From positions 1-37,208 of the forward strand of contig CBFFRP010000415.1 in assembly GCA_965644295.1 (NCBI GenBank): 37,208 nt of DNA, given 5' to 3'. Below, in pieces: positions 15,392-28,598 of the stretch. Position numbers and translations under genes: made by a program. The stretch comes from Paraphysomonas bandaiensis (Eukaryota; Protista; Chrysophyceae). The notes below the pieces were generated by a model that saw nothing but the letters and a program-made list of their open reading frames with translations, had not been told where the DNA came from and made no database searches. The first letter of the stretch is position 1; the number at the start of each line of letters is the position of its first letter.

Positions 15392-16318
15392 ATGAACGAA
15401 TCGTTCGTATGCAGTGAATGTCAGGGAGTTTTTCCAAAATCAAGACGAGAAGCTCACATTCGTTACTGGTGCAGTAAGCGGACTGATAGTGATGAAAGTG
15501 GAGTTAGTAGCACCCCCATTGAAAAATATGCATTGCGATCCAGTACTCCAGCTGAAATGACAGCCGCGTGGTCTCATAACCAGGTGGAATTTTCTCTTGG
15601 AGGCGTTGATATTGATTTAAAATTTGAGCAGCAATCGATATTTGGGGATATAAGTACTGGGGGTGCGTTGTGGCACTGTGAGCTAGTATTGGCAGAATGG
15701 TGTGCCCGTGAGATAAGTCAGCGGCAGCACAGTCATACAGCTGCCCCAATGAGAGTACTTGAGTTAGGCTGTGGGGTAGCTCCTGCGGCAGGCCTAGCTA
15801 CTCTTGCTATGGGTTGTGATGTGCTGCTCACTGACATGTCGAATGTGCTGCCCTTTATCGAGGGTAATATTCGACTAAATCACTCTGCAGTCGCAGCAGA
15901 GCGCAATTTACGTGGCTTTCATCCACTCTCGCGGATGTCATGTGATACTGAGGAGCTCATGTTTGGGGAACCTATACCTGTGCGTGCACGTTCCATGGCC
16001 CCTTTTGATCTTATCCTCTGCTCTGACTGTGTTTATCAACAGCGATTGCATGAACCTCTTGCTCGCACATTGTTGGATTTGCTTTGCAATGTGAAGACTG
16101 ATATACATAGTAATAGTAGATGTGTAGTGGCATTCTTCTTGCGGGAGCCATCTGATGCAGATTTTATATCCAAAACGTGTCCAAAATTAGGATTAGTTGC
16201 AACGGAATTGTTTGAGCTGGGCGATCTCATTCGTGATGCTCCATGGAGTACGGAGAGCACAGCGGCAATGCTCGTTCAGCATATTCATATGTATGAAATT
16301 ACAAATAAGTGTCGTTAG
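15392..16318 (+). CDS. METTL21/Methyltransf_16-family seven-beta-strand protein methyltransferase with N-terminal C2HC zinc finger, intronless
   Basis: 308-aa ORF with TGGALW, VLELGCG, VLLTD and FDLILCSDCVY (DxxY). N-terminal CSEC-x11-H-x4-C. Confidence 0.88.
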   Translation: MNESFVCSECQGVFPKSRREAHIRYWCSKRTDSDESGVSSTPIEKYALRSSTPAEMTAAWSHNQVEFSLGGVDIDLKFEQQSIFGDISTGGALWHCELVLAEWCAREISQRQHSHTAAPMRVLELGCGVAPAAGLATLAMGCDVLLTDMSNVLPFIEGNIRLNHSAVAAERNLRGFHPLSRMSCDTEELMFGEPIPVRARSMAPFDLILCSDCVYQQRLHEPLARTLLDLLCNVKTDIHSNSRCVVAFFLREPSDADFISKTCPKLGLVATELFELGDLIRDAPWSTESTAAMLVQHIHMYEITNKCR

Positions 16319-19303: not shown

Positions 19304-20551
19304 TTACTTCGTGAGCTCATCCAAAGTATCAGTGACCTGCGCCACTACCTCAGAAGAGGAGTAAGCTGCGGTGCTTGCCCCTCCAGCGGACTCAGCCTCT
19401 ATCTGTGCTTTGATCCAGTCGTAGGTTTCTTTCAGTCCTGTACGGATAGGAATTGAAGGTGCCCAACCGAGTTTTGCTTTGATCATAGTGTTGTCGCTGT
19501 TTCGGCCACGTACTCCCATTGGACCTGGGATGTGCTTGATGGGTAGATCCTTTCCCGCGAAACCCATGGCAATGCGGGCGAACTCGTTCATATCTACCAT
19601 CTCGTCGGTGCCAAGGTTAAGGGGCTCTACGCAATCCGAAAGCATGATCAGAATAGATCCATTTACACAGTCATCAATGAACATAAATGAACGGGTCTGT
19701 AGGCCATCTCCCCACACCTCGAATTCCTCGGTGGAAACTACAGCCTTGCGACAGAAAGCAGCGGGGACCTTTTCCCTTCCACCTTTCCAGGTACCGCGAG
19801 GTCCGTACACATTATGGTAACGGGCAACGCGTGTCTTAATAGGGAAGTCCTTAGCATAAGCCAGCGCCATCTCCTCGGCTATAAGCGAAGATCAGGATCA
19901 TAGCAATATTAAGCATAATAAATACACACCATATAGCTTTTCAAGACCATAAGTGTCCTGGGGATTAGCTGGCCAAGCCATATCTTCACGCAGACCAGGA
20001 TTAGCAGGATCAGTTTGCAAGTCTTCGTTGTACACGCATGCCGTCGAAGAGTAAAAGTATCTGCAAGAAGGCGTCAACACATCAACAAGTGTCATTATAT
20101 ATTCCACCTCTTAGCACCGTTCTGGCGAGCAGCTTCTAGCATGTTAAAGGAAATCATAGTGTTGTTGTAAAGTAGCACAGACTGATTGGACACAATGAAA
20201 CCCATACCACCCATATCAGCGGCCAAGTTATACACATGCTGGCAGCCTTTAGTTGCAGTAACGCAATTCTCCAACAACCTCAAATCCAGTTTCAAAAACT
20301 CATGACAGAACTCTGAGGGCTCCATGAATTCGTTATCCTTCCAATCTGCACACACAACATAGCACCCCTGATCCACATATTATGATACACATGCAGTTGT
20401 TTAAGTGTTAATTGACCTCTTCTTTCAATTTTTTGGCTAAATGAGACCCGATAAAACCCGCCCCTCCGCCGATACAAACCTTAACGGTTCCGTTCTCATT
20501 GAGTTCCTCCGGATGAGCAGCTTTGAAATCTTGAGCAACAGTGTTTCCCAT
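19304..20551 (-). CDS. GME: GDP-mannose 3,5-epimerase, 4 exons (20551-20417, 20367-20108, 20060-19930, 19878-19304)
   Basis: GGGAGFIGSH, ADWK, NLAADMGGMGFI, YSSTACVY, PQDTYGLEK (YxxxK), RYHNVYGPRGTWKGGREKVPAAFCRK, WGDGLQTRSF and GVRGRNSDN are GME signature segments. Introns of 49, 47 and 51 nt. Confidence 0.95.
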
Positions 20552-20973
20552 TGCAATATGTTGTGATGTAGCTCTGCTAAAGGACGTGAAAATTACAGAG
20601 TGACCGCACTGAGATGCACTGTGAATACTCTGCACTGCGACACACTGTATACGGTATACCAGTATAGGTTCCTACACATGCAGAGAGTCCATACCAACAC
20701 CCAATACTACGTATACACCATACCGGTATATATGCATAAACCAAAATTCCACTACACAATGTAAAATACAGAGAATACTGAACACAGAGAGGGAATACAT
20801 ACTGAGCTCCCACGTCGTAGGATTTCTATAGATTTCGAGTACATGTGACACACAGCACTGCATATCTTACAACCCCATCTCCTCACAGTCGCCCTACTCC
20901 ATGATATTCCCAAGCCACCTAGAGCACCACATCTCTTTCTTATCTTCATACCGAGTAATATCAATATCCTCAT

Positions 20974-23455
20974 ATGTCCCACCGAATCTTTTTTTTATTA
21001 TGTCTCCTGCTAGTGACCCATCGTGGGTGTATTTCAGACACCGTTATAGTGAAATTGCATCAGGGAACTACCAGAAATAATCTGCGGGATCATTTGGATA
21101 GTGTGATATCTCTATTGGGACATTCCTTCGTTCTTATAAGCACATATGACCACCTTATTACTGTTGGTGAAGGAAGGTATGGAATACCTCATTACGCTGC
21201 ATGGGTGACACCGAGTGGACGGAAGTTTCTTGTAGCTCGGAGAGAAGTGGAGAAAGTGGAGAATGATAAGCAGATTCACGCTCTACATTGTCATAAACAG
21301 AAAAATCCAGATTGGGGACTTTCTCGTATCAACCAACGAGGGTCATTTAATCCTTCAAGTTATAATTACAATGACACTATGATGGGTGTAGATGTGGATG
21401 TGTATATTATTGGTAAGTTGTTTCCGTTTATAATGGCTGTTGATCATTTATTTCCTCAGACACGGGTATATACTGTGAGAACAACGACTTCGTTAACAAA
21501 GCATATGGCAACTGTACCTATGGTGTGGACGTCATAGGTCGTGTAGTTAACCCTTTATGATGCTCTCATTAACTTTTGTGCTTTTTAGATGGGTCGCACA
21601 CAGATGGAAATGGTCACGGTAATTTTTGCTACACGTAATAATGCTGCATCACTGACTCTTGTGTAGGTACCCACTGCGCAGGAACAGTGGCAGGTTCGAC
21701 ATATGGTGTGGCGAAGGGGTCAAACTTAATTGCTGTGCGTGTACTTGATGATGACGGCGATGGCTCCACTTCAGGCATAATAGATGGAATTAATTGGTAT
21801 GATATGAATACACATATATGTGTGCATGTACGCATATGGTGTTGTTACGGAATATTATGCGTAGGATGTTGGGAAATGTGGCGTTAACTGGTCGCCGATC
21901 TGTAGCGAACCTTTCTTTGGGCGGATCGTATTCAGAACTTCTTAATGCCGCCACTTCTGCGGCAGTATCTGCTGGTGTAGTTATGGTGGTGGCCGCTGGC
22001 AATGATGACGACAATGCCTGCGAGTATTCTCCTGCGTCCGAGCCCTCAGCCCTTACTGTGGGGGCGACTGATGCTTCAGATGACAGAGCGGGGTATTCTA
22101 ATTATGGGGAGTGCTTAGATATCTTCGCTCCTGGGACTAGCATCACCTCGACCTATATTGGTTCACCTTCAGCTATCGCAACCATGTCTGGGACTTCCAT
22201 GGCTGCGCCACACGTTACGGGTGCAGCAGCGGCGTACCTTTCGCGCAGTAACTATACGCTTACGGCGACGGAGATTGGCGAACTTATTATCTCAGATGCC
22301 ACTTATGGAGTTCTTAACGGGGTTAATGGTTCGACCGCAGATGAAGACATCTCACCGAACTTACTGGCGTATGTTTCCCCTTGTGATGCAGGTGCATCTG
22401 GAGAAGAAAACTCAGGTGGTGTATTCCATAACTTTCGATCTTCCTTTCGTTCCCTGTGTCTGCTTTTCGTTGGAGTAATGGGATTAGAGGTCGGTATTGG
22501 AGTGCCGTTACAACCGTATCTGAAGTCCATGTCGTGGAGGTTGGTAATTGTAGTAGTGCTCTGCCAAGTGGTTTTAGTTCCGTTGCTAGCCATGGGGCTG
22601 GTTAGATACTTCAATCTATGGGAAGAACGTGCCATTGCCTTGTTACTTCTCAGTGCGTGCCCCAGCTCTGATGCAACATCTACCGTGTCGCGAATCACCA
22701 GTGGTAGTCTTCTGCTTTCATCCGGTCTCACTTTTTTCTCAAATACTGTAGCTGTTGTGGCTCTTCCTGTGTTTTCTGCTTTCTGGGTGCTGGCAGTGTA
22801 TGGACCCAGTGACGCTGTCTCAGTGTCCTGGTATATGTTTATAGCAATAATGATATGGCTAGCTGTTGGGTGTGGACTGGGTATGTTAGTCAGAGAACGG
22901 ACGAAGTCTTCCACGTGGAAGTGCGTGGATTGGCTTGTGAACTTTTTCTCGTTTGTTTTGTCAACAGCTCTGCTGGTGTTAGGTATACAGGTGTATGGGG
23001 AGGATATTTTAAATATGCCACCAGCAGTGTGGATATCCTCGCTGATCATGCAAATAGGCGGAGGGATATTTGGGTTAGTTCTTTCTGGATGTGCAAGTCT
23101 TTCTCTACGAGAGCAGCTGGCAGTCTCGTTAGAGACTTCTCTTAAAGCGTTTGTCGTCGCTGTTGCAATGATCGAGTATTCGTTCAATGGAGTTGACAAA
23201 GATGGCATGATGGCTGTACCCCTTGTGTACGGAGTCGTAATCGCGTGTAATATGTGTTGGTGTGTTCCTCTATTGTATATAGTTAACAAGTTATCAAAGA
23301 AAAAAAGAAGTGCTGTGGTGGAAAACAATGGTACGACGTCAACGCCTTTCCACGAAGTTATGGGATCTCAGAATATTGAGAATGCTCAGTCTTGTTATCT
23401 TGAGGAATCTTCGCTTAGAGATTCACTGTTGGATGAGAAGTACTCTATTAAGTAG
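20974..23455 (+). CDS. Subtilisin/proteinase K-like S8 protease (signal peptide, I9-like prodomain) fused to a C-terminal SLC10/BASS (SBF) multi-TM transporter domain; 5 exons (20974-21412, 21460-21537, 21589-21618, 21667-21796, 21865-23455)
   Basis: Spliced catalytic triad IIDTG / HGTHCAGT / [10 protein letters not shown] with oxyanion AAGN. The same last exon continues without a stop into [27 protein letters not shown] and AVSLETSLK with about nine hydrophobic helices. Confidence 0.9.
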
Positions 23456-23668
23456 GCATACAAATATATTTTCCTAGCGATGACGTTTTACGATATAATA
23501 TTAACAGGTGAGGAATTTCGAAAACTATTTGCGCGCGTAATTAGTCAATAGAACAACTTAGTAAAACTATGCAATATATATATTGTACTGCAGTCTGAAC
23601 GTTGAACTCACTTACTAATCAATAAATGAAAGTATCGCTTGTCATTCACTGGTTTATATCATCCCGTA

Positions 23669-26265: not shown

Positions 26266-28598
26266 CTATTTACCTTTCTTCGTCTTAATAGCACTGGATG
26301 TTTCTACATACTTTTTGGGAATACCACAGTCTTCAGATATAAACGTTTCTAGTTGGTGCATCCAGTTTCCCTATAAGTATTACAGAATGGTCAGCATCTA
26401 TCAAAGCATATTTCTACACTACACAACCTGTACAATGATTTCCATATCAGTACTCTTTCCAGGAACGGCACTGAGTGTAGTACTGCAAGCAAATCTGAAA
26501 GCAACTCCTTTACCACATACACAAACTAAGACATCAGGACCATCCTACCTCTTCTGGAAATCCTTCGCACATAACTTGGGATGCAATCCGTATGCTTCAA
26601 GGTGCCGCACTCGAGTAACTACCTTATTACCCATTCGTTTTTGAACTTCGATTCGGACCGATGGAGGTCGTCCAACAGATACTGAACTCTCACCTAGGGT
26701 AAATAATAAGTGTGGACGGTTAGGAATTGCGATGTCGATATACTGACAGTCACACACCTGAGGGGAAAACAATGGCATGGTATGGTGTGAGTTTGGCACG
26801 AACACGTGCCATTAGATCCTCCTTGGATATATCCAACTCAACAGGCGGCTCTGCAGGCGTCCGAACTTTTTGAGTGTGGATATGCTGGGGAGGGGGAGGT
26901 GGAAGATCTATAGGTTTCCATTTACTTGTCGACTGACTATTTTGCTGCCGAACTCCTCCCGGCAGGGATGATGAAAGTAGAACACCTGCAACCATTGTAT
27001 ATCCTCCCCAAGAATCTCGCGCATCGTGTTCTTCGTTCTCATCATCCAGTTCTTCGTTCTCATCATCATACTCGCAGTCACTCTTTTCCCTGCCAGCAGC
27101 GTCTACAATAGGTTTGTCCTGGTCAACACGATGCAGTGGTTTCTGCTTTTTGTCGCAAGCAGGCCTTCTGATATATTCGTGAAGAGGGTCATCTACTGGT
27201 ATCAGTACGCGTCGTTCGTCTTCTGGGTGCGTAAGAGATCTTTCTGTGATATGGCGAATCACCAATTCCTGGATCTACATGTACATTTATTACCATACGA
27301 AAAAAGAATGATGCCAGACACTAACCTCTCGTCCAGTGAAACAAACACCGAAGGCTCCTTCTACTGTAGAGAGGGCCAAATTCATAGGACGGGGAAGTTT
27401 ATAAAGCTCAAAAACTCGTAGAACTCCGCTACCTGTCTGAGACGGAGAACCGAATCCGAGAATCATCGCCCGAAACTCCTCAGGACAATCTACCCTCACT
27501 GATTCCTTGTGGGTTTTAAAATGGTCATGTTGTCGCTGAATACATACAAGCTCCCCCACACCATCACCGATCCCGGACACTTCTAATAAACCTTCACCAT
27601 GTAAATGTTCCAAAAAGGAGGAAACTTTCCCAAAAGACGACCGACGTACAGTGAGAGTGGGCTCCCCAGGGAGAGCACAACGACAGACAGTGCTCCAAAG
27701 TGAAGACACTAAAAGTGGAAGGTCGCGATCTTTCAGTATGTACTTAAGCGCACGAAGTGTACAAACCAACATTGCGCGATCCATATCATCACTAGACTCC
27801 ACTATAGATTCAGTCCTTACCCCACCGTGTCGCATGTCCTCATGCTGCTGTTGTTCTTCACATGATGCTTTTTCATCTCCACTCCCTTCCTCTCCATCGC
27901 CCCCTTCGTCCTGCTGAACTCCCTCTACTCGGTGCAGTTGTCTCATGAACCCAGGATTGGGGAAGCATACAGTCTCTTCCACCCCCACACGGCGAACTGA
28001 ACTCCAGAGACAATCACCGAATGTGTGGACAACACTCACAGCTTTCCCTTTGGCCCCTCCACATAGTCCGCCTCCATTAATCACATTTTCCCCACTGACC
28101 TCTGACTTACCCACTGCGAAAGGTAACGGGTTTCCAAGAACACGAATACACACTTTCTCGCCTTCCTCTAAACTTGGTAGGTCTGCAAAAAAAATCATAT
28201 CCGTAACCACACTAGAATTAAGCAACATCCCTACCTTCAATATCGACCACTCCAGGCAACATAAGATCTGCACCCTTCAACAGAAACTCCGATACTGGTA
28301 CATGAATGACCACACAACGCATAATCGATGCAAAATGCCACAAGGCAAATACAGTGGGAAAAATCTCTGTTCTGCCGGCCACATCAAAAAAATAAGGTAT
28401 ATTATCAACCGAATACACTAATGTACGAGATGCATATTTCGTTATGATGACATTCCCTTTCCCTCCAATCACACCACTCAATTGGTCCTCTAAAATCGCC
28501 GGAAAATTGTCCCTGATGGACTGCTGTAGTTTACGGACATCTTTATTTTTCATATGTGACTTCGAGCGCTCCATGAGATCGCCCGACTTTTTGAACAT
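26266..28598 (-). CDS. EIF2D: Eukaryotic translation initiation factor 2D (ligatin), 6 exons (28598-28235, 28182-27326, 27274-26758, 26693-26549, 26494-26428, 26370-26266)
   Basis: MFKK start, pre-PUA (FPTVFALW), PUA (GADLMLPGV), winged-helix region (SSFGKVSSFL), SWIB-like segment and C-terminal SUI1 (RMGNKVVTRVRHLEAYG...KRFACST...EIIVQGN). GT-AG introns keep the frame. Confidence 0.92.

Follow-up and report, generated by a model that had tools for sequence, protein, structure and literature searches.

A gene of the chrysophyte Paraphysomonas bandaiensis raises the question of whether a secreted-type subtilisin (peptidase family S8) and a membrane domain of the SLC10/BASS transporter family (Pfam family SBF) can be parts of one polypeptide and, if they are, what the membrane domain does there. 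The gene lies at positions 20974-23455 of the + strand of a 37,208-nucleotide (nt) stretch of DNA (GenBank assembly GCA_965644295.1, contig CBFFRP010000415.1, positions 1 to 37,208), the whole of which is referred to as the window. A preliminary description made from the sequence alone had proposed that the two domains are fused within one exon and that the fusion is not an artefact of the splice model. Our results bear this out: one expressed gene encodes both the protease and the SLC10 domain in a single chain.

The gene has five exons and a product of 755 residues, with the stop codon included in the coordinates above. The largest open frame (21818-23455) runs free of stops from the second half of the subtilisin into a hydrophobic region of multiple helices. 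When the last exon alone (window 21866-23452, + strand) was compared with Pfam, Peptidase_S8 matched exon residues 10-154 with an expect value (E) of 1.1e-25 (90.9 bits) and SBF (PF01758) matched exon residues 201-374 with an E of 2.5e-10 (40.8 bits against a gathering score of 24.3). SBF_like also exceeded its cut-off (E 3.3e-8, 33.6 bits against 25). Two of the three families that the preliminary description expected, Peptidase_S8 and SBF, are thus above their Pfam gathering scores, and neither a stop nor an intron separates them.

Transcript data agree with this model. A 2507-nt JGI transcript contig (L001), which encodes the 742-residue protein P0001, is colinear with the window from about 20868 to 23588 and shows exactly four gaps, of 47, 51, 48, and 68 nt. 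The DNA of L001 differs from the window at two bases; nonetheless, the best alignment of P0001 with the last-exon query is listed as 100% identical. X8, X9, and X10, three culture runs (recorded as RNA by guess) that belong to different studies, each gave one spliced contig of 2433-2518 nt that contains all four GT..AG joints. These contigs start at 20868, 20878, and 20880, respectively, end at 23524-23588, and include an unbroken piece from 21864 to 23524-23588. In a marine polyA metatranscriptome (X14), one contig (22351-22560) bridges the linker between the two domains and another is spliced at intron 4. The evidence from runs consists of contigs, not raw reads, and may therefore miss minor isoforms. 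Several DNA runs contain 0.93-1.00 of the sampled words of 20868-23588, and the runs that contain the gene are marine. An MMETSP open reading frame of 755 residues (P0270), from the same 90% cluster as P0001, differs from the window product only at M566V and M661V. P0001 and P0270 served for analyses of the whole protein and single exons for searches from the window; the window exons were joined only to map coordinates and for comparison with P0270. A member of this cluster is labeled MMETSP1103, TAXON_ID 36769, which is Paraphysomonas (Chrysophyceae, Stramenopiles). The gene model is as follows.

20868-23588, + strand: extent of the mRNA according to the spliced contigs, with a 5′ untranslated region (UTR) of ~106 nt and a 3′ UTR of ~133 nt
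20974-21412, + strand: exon 1, from the start codon through the signal-like peptide and the I9-like prodomain into the mature S8 domain, ending with base 1 of the Asp147 codon
21413-21459, + strand: intron 1, 47 nt, GT..AG, from the joints in X8, X9, and X10 and the gap in the L001 alignment
21460-21537, + strand: exon 2, S8, with the remainder of the Asp147 codon and the DTG motif
21538-21588, + strand: intron 2, 51 nt, GT..AG, from the L001 gap and the X8, X9, and X10 joints
21589-21618, + strand: exon 3, 30 nt, S8, from L001, X8, X9, and X10
21619-21666, + strand: intron 3, 48 nt, GT..AG, from the L001 gap and the X8, X9, and X10 joints
21667-21796, + strand: exon 4, S8, with the catalytic His185 at 21672-21674
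21797-21864, + strand: intron 4, 68 nt, GT..AG, from the X8, X9, and X10 joints and also from X14
21865-23455, + strand: exon 5, with the rest of S8, the linker, the SLC10 domain, the tail, and the stop codon TAG at 23453-55

Because spliced contigs running from UTR to UTR were recovered from three culture runs and the linker is also bridged in X14, the fusion is not an artefact of assembly or of the gene model. The explanation that it is an assembly join, a read-through of two genes, or a mis-spliced model is refuted: S8, linker, and SBF lie in one uninterrupted exon, the junction is crossed by single contigs from all four of these sources, and the DNA runs contain the words of the locus. The preliminary description had pointed to 22350-22450 as the place where an assembly join or separate transcripts might be found, and contigs cross this interval. 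Also against an artefact are two genes of the same architecture at about 38% identity, on contigs L002 and L004. These contigs are eukaryotic (neighbors WD40, RIB43A, Mpv17, and RING), and both genes have their four introns at the same positions as the window gene.

Two further open frames overlap the gene. An out-of-frame upstream ATG in the transcribed 5′ UTR opens a 59-codon upstream frame (20901-21080) that runs across the main start codon at 20974. On the opposite strand, a 341-residue frame (22303-23328, - strand) overlaps the exon that encodes SLC10; as the GT..AG splice sites show transcription of the + strand, it is most likely a shadow of the coding frame.

On sequence evidence, the protease half is an S8A enzyme of the proteinase K/aqualysin type with an intact active site, and activity is predicted. 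PF00082 matches P0001 with 141.7 bits against a gathering score of 21.8. Among solved structures, P0001 is closest to aqualysin-1 (E 1.5e-70) and to proteinase K (E 1.7e-67), with the whole mature domain aligned. The catalytic residues D147, H185, and S337 align to aqualysin-1 in Asp-His-Ser order together with the oxyanion residue N272, so that the triad claimed from the first inspection is present. Ser337 is found in all ten fused proteins known to us (described below) and Asn272 in all eight that cover this position; the DTG and HGTH exons are present in the relatives on L002 and L004. The domain closes with an SPNLLAY strand, which corresponds to the conserved C-terminal strand of the proteinase K group; across the S8 alignment its S, P, and N hardly vary.

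The prodomain is less clear by sequence: the inhibitor I9 family (PF05922) gives an E of 0.085, with 14 bits against a cut-off of 21.2, which is below threshold. A full-length AlphaFold2 (AF2) model has a beta-alpha-beta-beta-alpha-beta unit at residues 19-102 with a predicted local distance difference test (pLDDT) score above 90, followed by a low-confidence stretch at residues 105-119. The alignment of P0001 with the pro-proteinase K structure 8rse begins at residue 62 of P0001. By eye, residues 1-19 have the appearance of a signal peptide, with a short basic n-region and ten hydrophobic residues in an n/h/c pattern. The features of this half are listed here.

20974-21030, + strand: signal-like peptide, residues 1-19, assigned by eye
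21031-21297, + strand: I9-like prodomain, residues about 20-108, from the sub-threshold I9 match and the AF2 unit
21412 and 21460-61, + strand: split codon of D147, from the aqualysin-1 alignment
21865-22375, + strand: first part of exon 5, the C-terminal half of S8, from the Pfam S8 match and the aqualysin-1 alignment; it ends in the SPNLLAY strand
22001-03, + strand: oxyanion Asn272, from the aqualysin-1 alignment
22196-98, + strand: catalytic Ser337, from the aqualysin-1 alignment

The C-terminal half, which had been assigned to SLC10/BASS at first inspection, belongs there by sequence and by model. Apart from the SBF match, sequence searches found a 300-residue structure named 'sodium/bile acid transporter family protein' (28sv, E 6e-13), NTCP structures (E 2e-9 to 5e-6), and the Neisseria ASBT (E 1e-4). 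An AF2 model of residues 411-713, based on 57 aligned sequences, has a pLDDT of 93.8, a predicted template-modeling score (pTM) of 0.91, and nine transmembrane (TM) helices, with breaks in TM3 and TM8 at residues 490-495 and 652-654. Comparison of this model with known structures, which the preliminary description had suggested, made human NTCP the top Foldseek match (E 9e-11, TM-score 0.78-0.83), with bacterial ASBTs next and an E range of 1e-10 to 1e-8 for NTCP/ASBT. The half is therefore a true SLC10/BASS fold both in its Pfam SBF match and in its predicted core-plus-panel arrangement. The features from the end of the protease onward are as follows.

22376-22420, + strand: linker from S397 to G411, with the bounds of the preliminary description mapped onto the protein
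22382-22417, + strand: flexible tether, residues 399-410, AF2 pLDDT below 50
22382-22384, + strand: Cys399, present in 10/10 fused proteins
22433-23287, + strand: nine-TM SLC10/BASS (SBF) domain, residues 416-700, from Pfam SBF, AF2, and Foldseek, with TM3 and TM8 discontinuous
22433-22498, + strand: TM1, the best-conserved helix
22565-22567, + strand: Gln460, equivalent of NTCP Q68 (Na2), kept in 10/10 fused proteins
23132-23146, + strand: Glu649-Lys653, an acid-x3-base pair in place of E257/Q261, from the alignments
23288-23455, + strand: cytosolic C-terminal tail, residues 701-755, with a polybasic start, an L-x-x-[AS]-L-[LIVM]...Y motif, and the stop codon TAG at 23453-55

NTCP has nine helices and an extracellular N-terminus (PMC9242856). 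Since the sequence match to NTCP begins at the first helix of NTCP, an exoplasmic protease fits the predicted topology, with the N-terminus out and the C-terminus in. This is consistent with the earlier proposal of a luminal or extracellular protease. Arg and Lys are concentrated in the loops predicted to be cytosolic and in the stretch that immediately follows TM9, which fits the positive-inside rule.

The place where the two halves meet is itself conserved. Cys399 stands three residues past the last protease strand and is invariant in the fused proteins. The tether is ~12 residues long in the window protein and 8-13 residues across relatives, is rich in Gly, Ser, Asp, and Glu, and in most relatives contains N-x-S/T sequons (NGT, NSS, or NST). 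It is followed by a conserved motif ahead of TM1, G-[IV]-F...[KR]-[ST]-[AS]-F-R. The full-length AF2 model has a pTM of 0.63, and with the low pLDDT of the tether there is no confident docking of S8 on SLC10. A docking prediction with the mature S8 and SLC10 domains gave a score of 0.00 but was run without controls and is evidence neither way.

The ion sites give a different picture from the fold. In NTCP, Na1 is formed by S105, N106, T123, and E257 and Na2 by the side chains of Q68 and Q261 (PMC9242856). We compared these sites between the fused proteins and 26 ordinary SBF proteins, using a 55-row alignment and then a ten-member alignment of the family. The equivalent of Q68 is Gln in all ten fused and all 26 ordinary proteins, and that of E257 is Glu or Asp in 10/10 fused proteins and Glu in 25/26 ordinary ones. 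By contrast, the equivalent of Q261 is Lys or Arg in 10/10 fused proteins (Lys653 here) and Gln in 26/26 ordinary proteins, so that the Na2 site of NTCP is not reproduced. The Na1 positions of the window protein read T, S, T, and E and also depart from NTCP. The equivalent of N106 is Ser in half of the fused proteins (5/10) and Asn in every ordinary one (26/26). Losses extend to neighboring positions. The equivalent of G259 is not Gly in 7/10 fused proteins (Gly in 26/26 ordinary), and that of N262 is not Asn in 7/10 (Asn in 22/26 ordinary). In a table of seven members, G101 is lost in six and G114 in five, as compared with Gly in 25/26 and 24/26 ordinary proteins, respectively. The P100 equivalent is retained.

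The pattern of conservation along the domain has also changed. In ordinary SBF proteins the mean pairwise identity is 38.8% in the core versus 28.6% in the panel, with peaks of 59% in TM3b and 68% at the TM8 break. In the fused family the core (26.8%) shows no excess over the panel (28.0%), and TM3b and the TM8 break are at 22% and 16%. Between subclades, identity is 59-66% in the S8 half and 25-31% in the SBF part. In the P0002 subclade, which has six members, no segment of the whole alignment is as conserved as TM1 (91.5% identity), and the S8 half is at 84.3%. Conservation specific to the family thus falls on the junction and the tail (Cys399, the pre-TM1 motif, TM1, and the tail motif) rather than on the ion site. 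The tail motif, L-x-x-[AS]-L-[LIVM] plus a Tyr near the C-terminus, recurs in most members (P0002, P0003, P0121, P0272, and P0393-P0395). It may be a sorting signal, with a spacing unlike that of the canonical [DE]xxxL[LI]. The transcript contigs differ from the window at 22557, 22883, and 23168. All three differences are non-synonymous and in the SLC10 part, with none in the protease. A>G changes in all runs give M566V and M661V, and a T>A change in X9 and X10 would give V457E in TM2, three residues ahead of the conserved Gln460.

Because of these site replacements and the flattened conservation of the core, the SLC10 part is probably not a Na+-coupled symporter any more; the two observations are the strongest arguments against a canonical carrier. 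On the NCBIfam model TIGR00841 'bass', the protein scores 84.8 bits over profile positions 36-317 of 321, which is below the subfamily cut-off of 326.3. Since the defining features of Na1 and Na2 are missing and the score is under the 'bass' threshold, the protein does not belong in the class of bile acid:sodium symporters. The earlier idea of proteolysis coupled to uptake, if taken as Na+-driven uptake, is not supported by these data either, given Lys or Arg for the Na2 Gln in 10/10, Ser for N106 in 5/10, a core no more conserved than the panel, and a tether that is modeled as flexible.

An exhaustive profile search with the membrane domain against 1.84 billion representatives gave 4 proteins at E below 1e-30 and then a sharp drop to ordinary SBF proteins; a targeted word search gave three further fused proteins. 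The S8+SBF architecture is present in about ten clusters at 90% identity (P0001/P0270, P0002, P0003, P0121, P0122/P0272, P0123, P0132, P0393, P0394, and P0395). These come from JGI, ENA, Logan, MMETSP, and EukProt, none of them is from NCBI or UniProt, and the sole name given to any is 'predicted Na+-dependent transporter'. Every close match that extends N-terminally carries S8, and other SBF proteins with N-terminal extensions are without it. A protein-atlas search with P0001 returned generic S8 clusters only, all below 0.9. Literature searches for an S8-SBF/SLC10 fusion and for Paraphysomonas subtilisin found no description. The preliminary description knew of no report of this architecture, and within the NCBI and UniProt proteins and the literature searched this held true.

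The relatives have protein identities of 57-80%. In a quick maximum-likelihood tree (IQ-TREE), the fused SBF domains form one clade with an SH-like approximate likelihood ratio (SH-aLRT) support of 99 and long branches, far from the canonical paralogue of the same genome. The best-named relatives of the gene next to P0002 are from chrysophytes (Dinobryon MMETSP0019 and Ochromonadaceae sp. CCMP2298). The simplest reading is a single origin of the fusion within chrysophytes. This neighbor on the P0002 contig is an ABCC4/MRP-like ABC transporter gene (L002 2908-7485), which lies tail-to-tail with the fusion gene. It has a 74% relative (P0274) on a Logan contig of 7099 nt. The contig recorded for P0121 has the same source and the same length, which points to conserved synteny of the two genes in that subclade. 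No ABCC4/MRP-like neighbor is found beside the fusion gene in the window.

The function that we favor for the SLC10 module, at about an even chance, is mainly that of a polytopic anchor and sorting platform, in which case the module would be a pseudo-transporter or, at best, a heavily modified transporter. The putative signal peptide would bring the prodomain and the protease to the exoplasmic face, either at the cell surface or in the lumen of an endomembrane or food-vacuole compartment, and the nine helices would then leave the C-terminal tail in the cytosol. After loss of the prodomain by the usual autocatalysis, the protease would be membrane-tethered and catalytically competent. The SLC10 module would hold it near the membrane, the conserved cytosolic tail would direct it to its compartment, and an internal acid-base pair (Glu/Asp...Lys/Arg) would stabilize the crossover in place of Na+. 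In line with this, the SLC10 domain appears altered in its sequence, with an acid/base pair in the place of Na2, several X-motif glycines lost, and no preferential conservation of the core. The genome also retains a canonical stand-alone SBF gene in addition to the fusion, which we count for an anchor. Several points weigh against it, the strongest against a pure anchor being the cost and persistence of nine helices and three buried polar residues. A single-pass helix is a far cheaper anchor. At ~25% identity across about ten clusters, no helix of the nine has been lost, the two discontinuous ones included, and Gln460, Glu/Asp649, and Lys/Arg653 remain in the interior; this suggests that the membrane domain does more than anchor. 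In the P0002 subclade, identity in the X3 and X8 loops still amounts to 80-86%. Lys or Arg in place of Na+ is generally known from working Na+-independent transporters of other folds, of the ApcT type (compare PMC6472337). Finally, the signal peptide was assigned by eye, and localization, activity, and processing are predictions.

Some of these points lead to a more tentative reading, which we consider possible but doubtful, that the SLC10 module is still a Na+-independent carrier. The amine of the Lys or Arg would stand in for the Na2 ion, transport might be H+-coupled, and the carrier would cooperate with the tethered protease, for example in a food vacuole, by moving a product or cofactor out of the exoplasmic compartment where the protease digests proteins. 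The protein might then be an SLC10 carrier capped by its own protease, that is, a digest-and-take-up device or one for protease-gated transport or signaling. The fold, both crossover helices, the Q68 equivalent, and the acidic residue are fully conserved, as is the Lys or Arg in 10/10, and the tether is short with a conserved length. The predicted topology sets the protease at the outward mouth of the carrier, and lumen to cytosol is the direction of uptake by NTCP. Paraphysomonas is generally known as a colorless phagotroph that feeds on bacteria. There is a precedent in Dictyostelium, where the TagC protease is displayed on a transporter body at the cell surface and processes a signal precursor (PMC3743828). 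However, the core is not conserved above the panel, the signature glycines and N262 are lost, and packing between the domains is not confident in AF2. The substrates generally known for SLC10/BASS proteins are small organic anions and not peptides, and all three strain differences change residues in the SBF part, including V457E in TM2. We think it unlikely that the protein is instead a precursor polyprotein in which the tether is cut to free a soluble secreted protease and a stand-alone SLC10 protein that act independently. Subtilases are generally known to process their own prodomains, the low-confidence residues 105-119 are at the usual prodomain junction, so that processing would be part of the life cycle of the enzyme, and the tether is predicted to be disordered. 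Yet the tether lacks the large hydrophobic residues that enzymes of the proteinase K type prefer, has sequons in most relatives, and is flanked by the invariant Cys and the pre-TM1 motif. Because of this composition, the sequons, and the conserved flanks, it looks protected and fixed rather than like a cleavage site.

Seen by analogy, the fusion protein resembles NTCP and would function in the manner of a membrane-anchored subtilase; its nearest architectural analogues are TagA/B/C and SLC10A3/A5. It shares with proteinase K and aqualysin-1 (S8A) the triad, the oxyanion Asn, the conserved disulfide cysteines, and the SPNLLAY strand, and in the AF2 model its N-terminal prodomain has an I9-like fold. 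However, proteins of that group are soluble and secreted or have soluble C-terminal extensions, whereas the window protein continues into a nine-TM domain after ~12 residues. With NTCP/ASBT and the bacterial ASBTs it has in common the core-plus-panel fold, nine TM helices with the N-terminus out as in NTCP, the broken TM3 and TM8, and the equivalents of Q68, P100, and E257. It differs in the Lys or Arg for Q261, the Ser for N106 in half of the family, the lost Gly and Asn of the X motifs, the lack of a core excess in conservation, and a 400-residue enzyme ectodomain.

TagA, TagB, and TagC likewise have a subtilisin-like protease as their N-terminal part, ahead of a polytopic transporter body. 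Their body is an ATP-driven ABC-B half-transporter, whereas that of the window protein has the fold of an SLC10 secondary carrier. Pfam found no match to ABC_membrane or ABC_tran on the fusion protein, which is not a member of the TagA/B/C group. SLC10A3 (P3) and SLC10A5 have an exoplasmic N-terminal domain, NTCP5_P3_N (PF24690), before the SLC10 body and rank with the closest Atlas folds (TM-score 0.83-0.84). NTCP5_P3_N is no protease, and the two proteins occur in animals, not in stramenopiles. PF24690 was not among the Pfam matches of the fusion protein (E up to 0.1-1). No transport substrate is generally known for SLC10A3 or SLC10A5 (for SLC10A4, see PMC4472396). SLC10A4 was considered as an analogous protease-activated transporter and was rejected, the claim of its activation by thrombin not having been reproduced (PMC4472396).

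Within the same genome, the canonical stand-alone SBF gene (G000:C236:48404-49261; L006 1498-2526) encodes 342 residues. Its product belongs to the same fold family, has the nine-TM start without an extra helix, and is 27% identical to the fused domain. By contrast with the fusion, it has the canonical SPGG..SN (SPGGTTSN) and ETGVQS motifs and no protease, and the tree places it among ordinary SBF proteins. A third, weaker SBF-like match is at C244:23716-24411. S8 domain shuffling is common in this genome, since at least 16 S8 loci occur in it, three copies of them in one open frame of 2746 residues. The three S8 matches of that frame (G000:C137:28151-32914, - strand) have identical scores and lie 2.2 kb apart, and the locus is a tandem multi-protease gene.

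Both domains are from textbook families, and it is their union that is unrecorded in the databases and literature searched. For SLC10 biology, the family offers a conserved natural replacement of Gln by Lys or Arg at the Na2 site. It is also a second, independent case of an SLC10 body with an ectodomain, which may bear on the unexplained orphans SLC10A3, A4, and A5. In the field of protist biology, bacterivorous chrysophytes would tether a strong general protease to a membrane in an unstudied way. The name 'predicted Na+-dependent transporter' assigned by annotation pipelines is probably wrong about Na+ and ignores the protease. If the module were a working carrier or transceptor, the protein would represent the first chimera of an enzyme with SLC10 and nature's own experiment in Na2-site replacement, and chrysophyte phagotrophs would own a digest-and-take-up device in a single polypeptide on the food vacuole or cell surface.

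The genes around the fusion in the window are of other kinds. The divergent neighbor (19304-20650, - strand) is split by introns and resembles an NAD-dependent epimerase/GDP-mannose dehydratase, possibly GDP-mannose 3,5-epimerase. Further out are two ordinary nuclear genes, one for a lysine methyltransferase with Methyltransf_16 and a C2HC zinc finger (15392-16315, + strand) and one for a protein with an eIF2D winged-helix domain (27290-28270, - strand).

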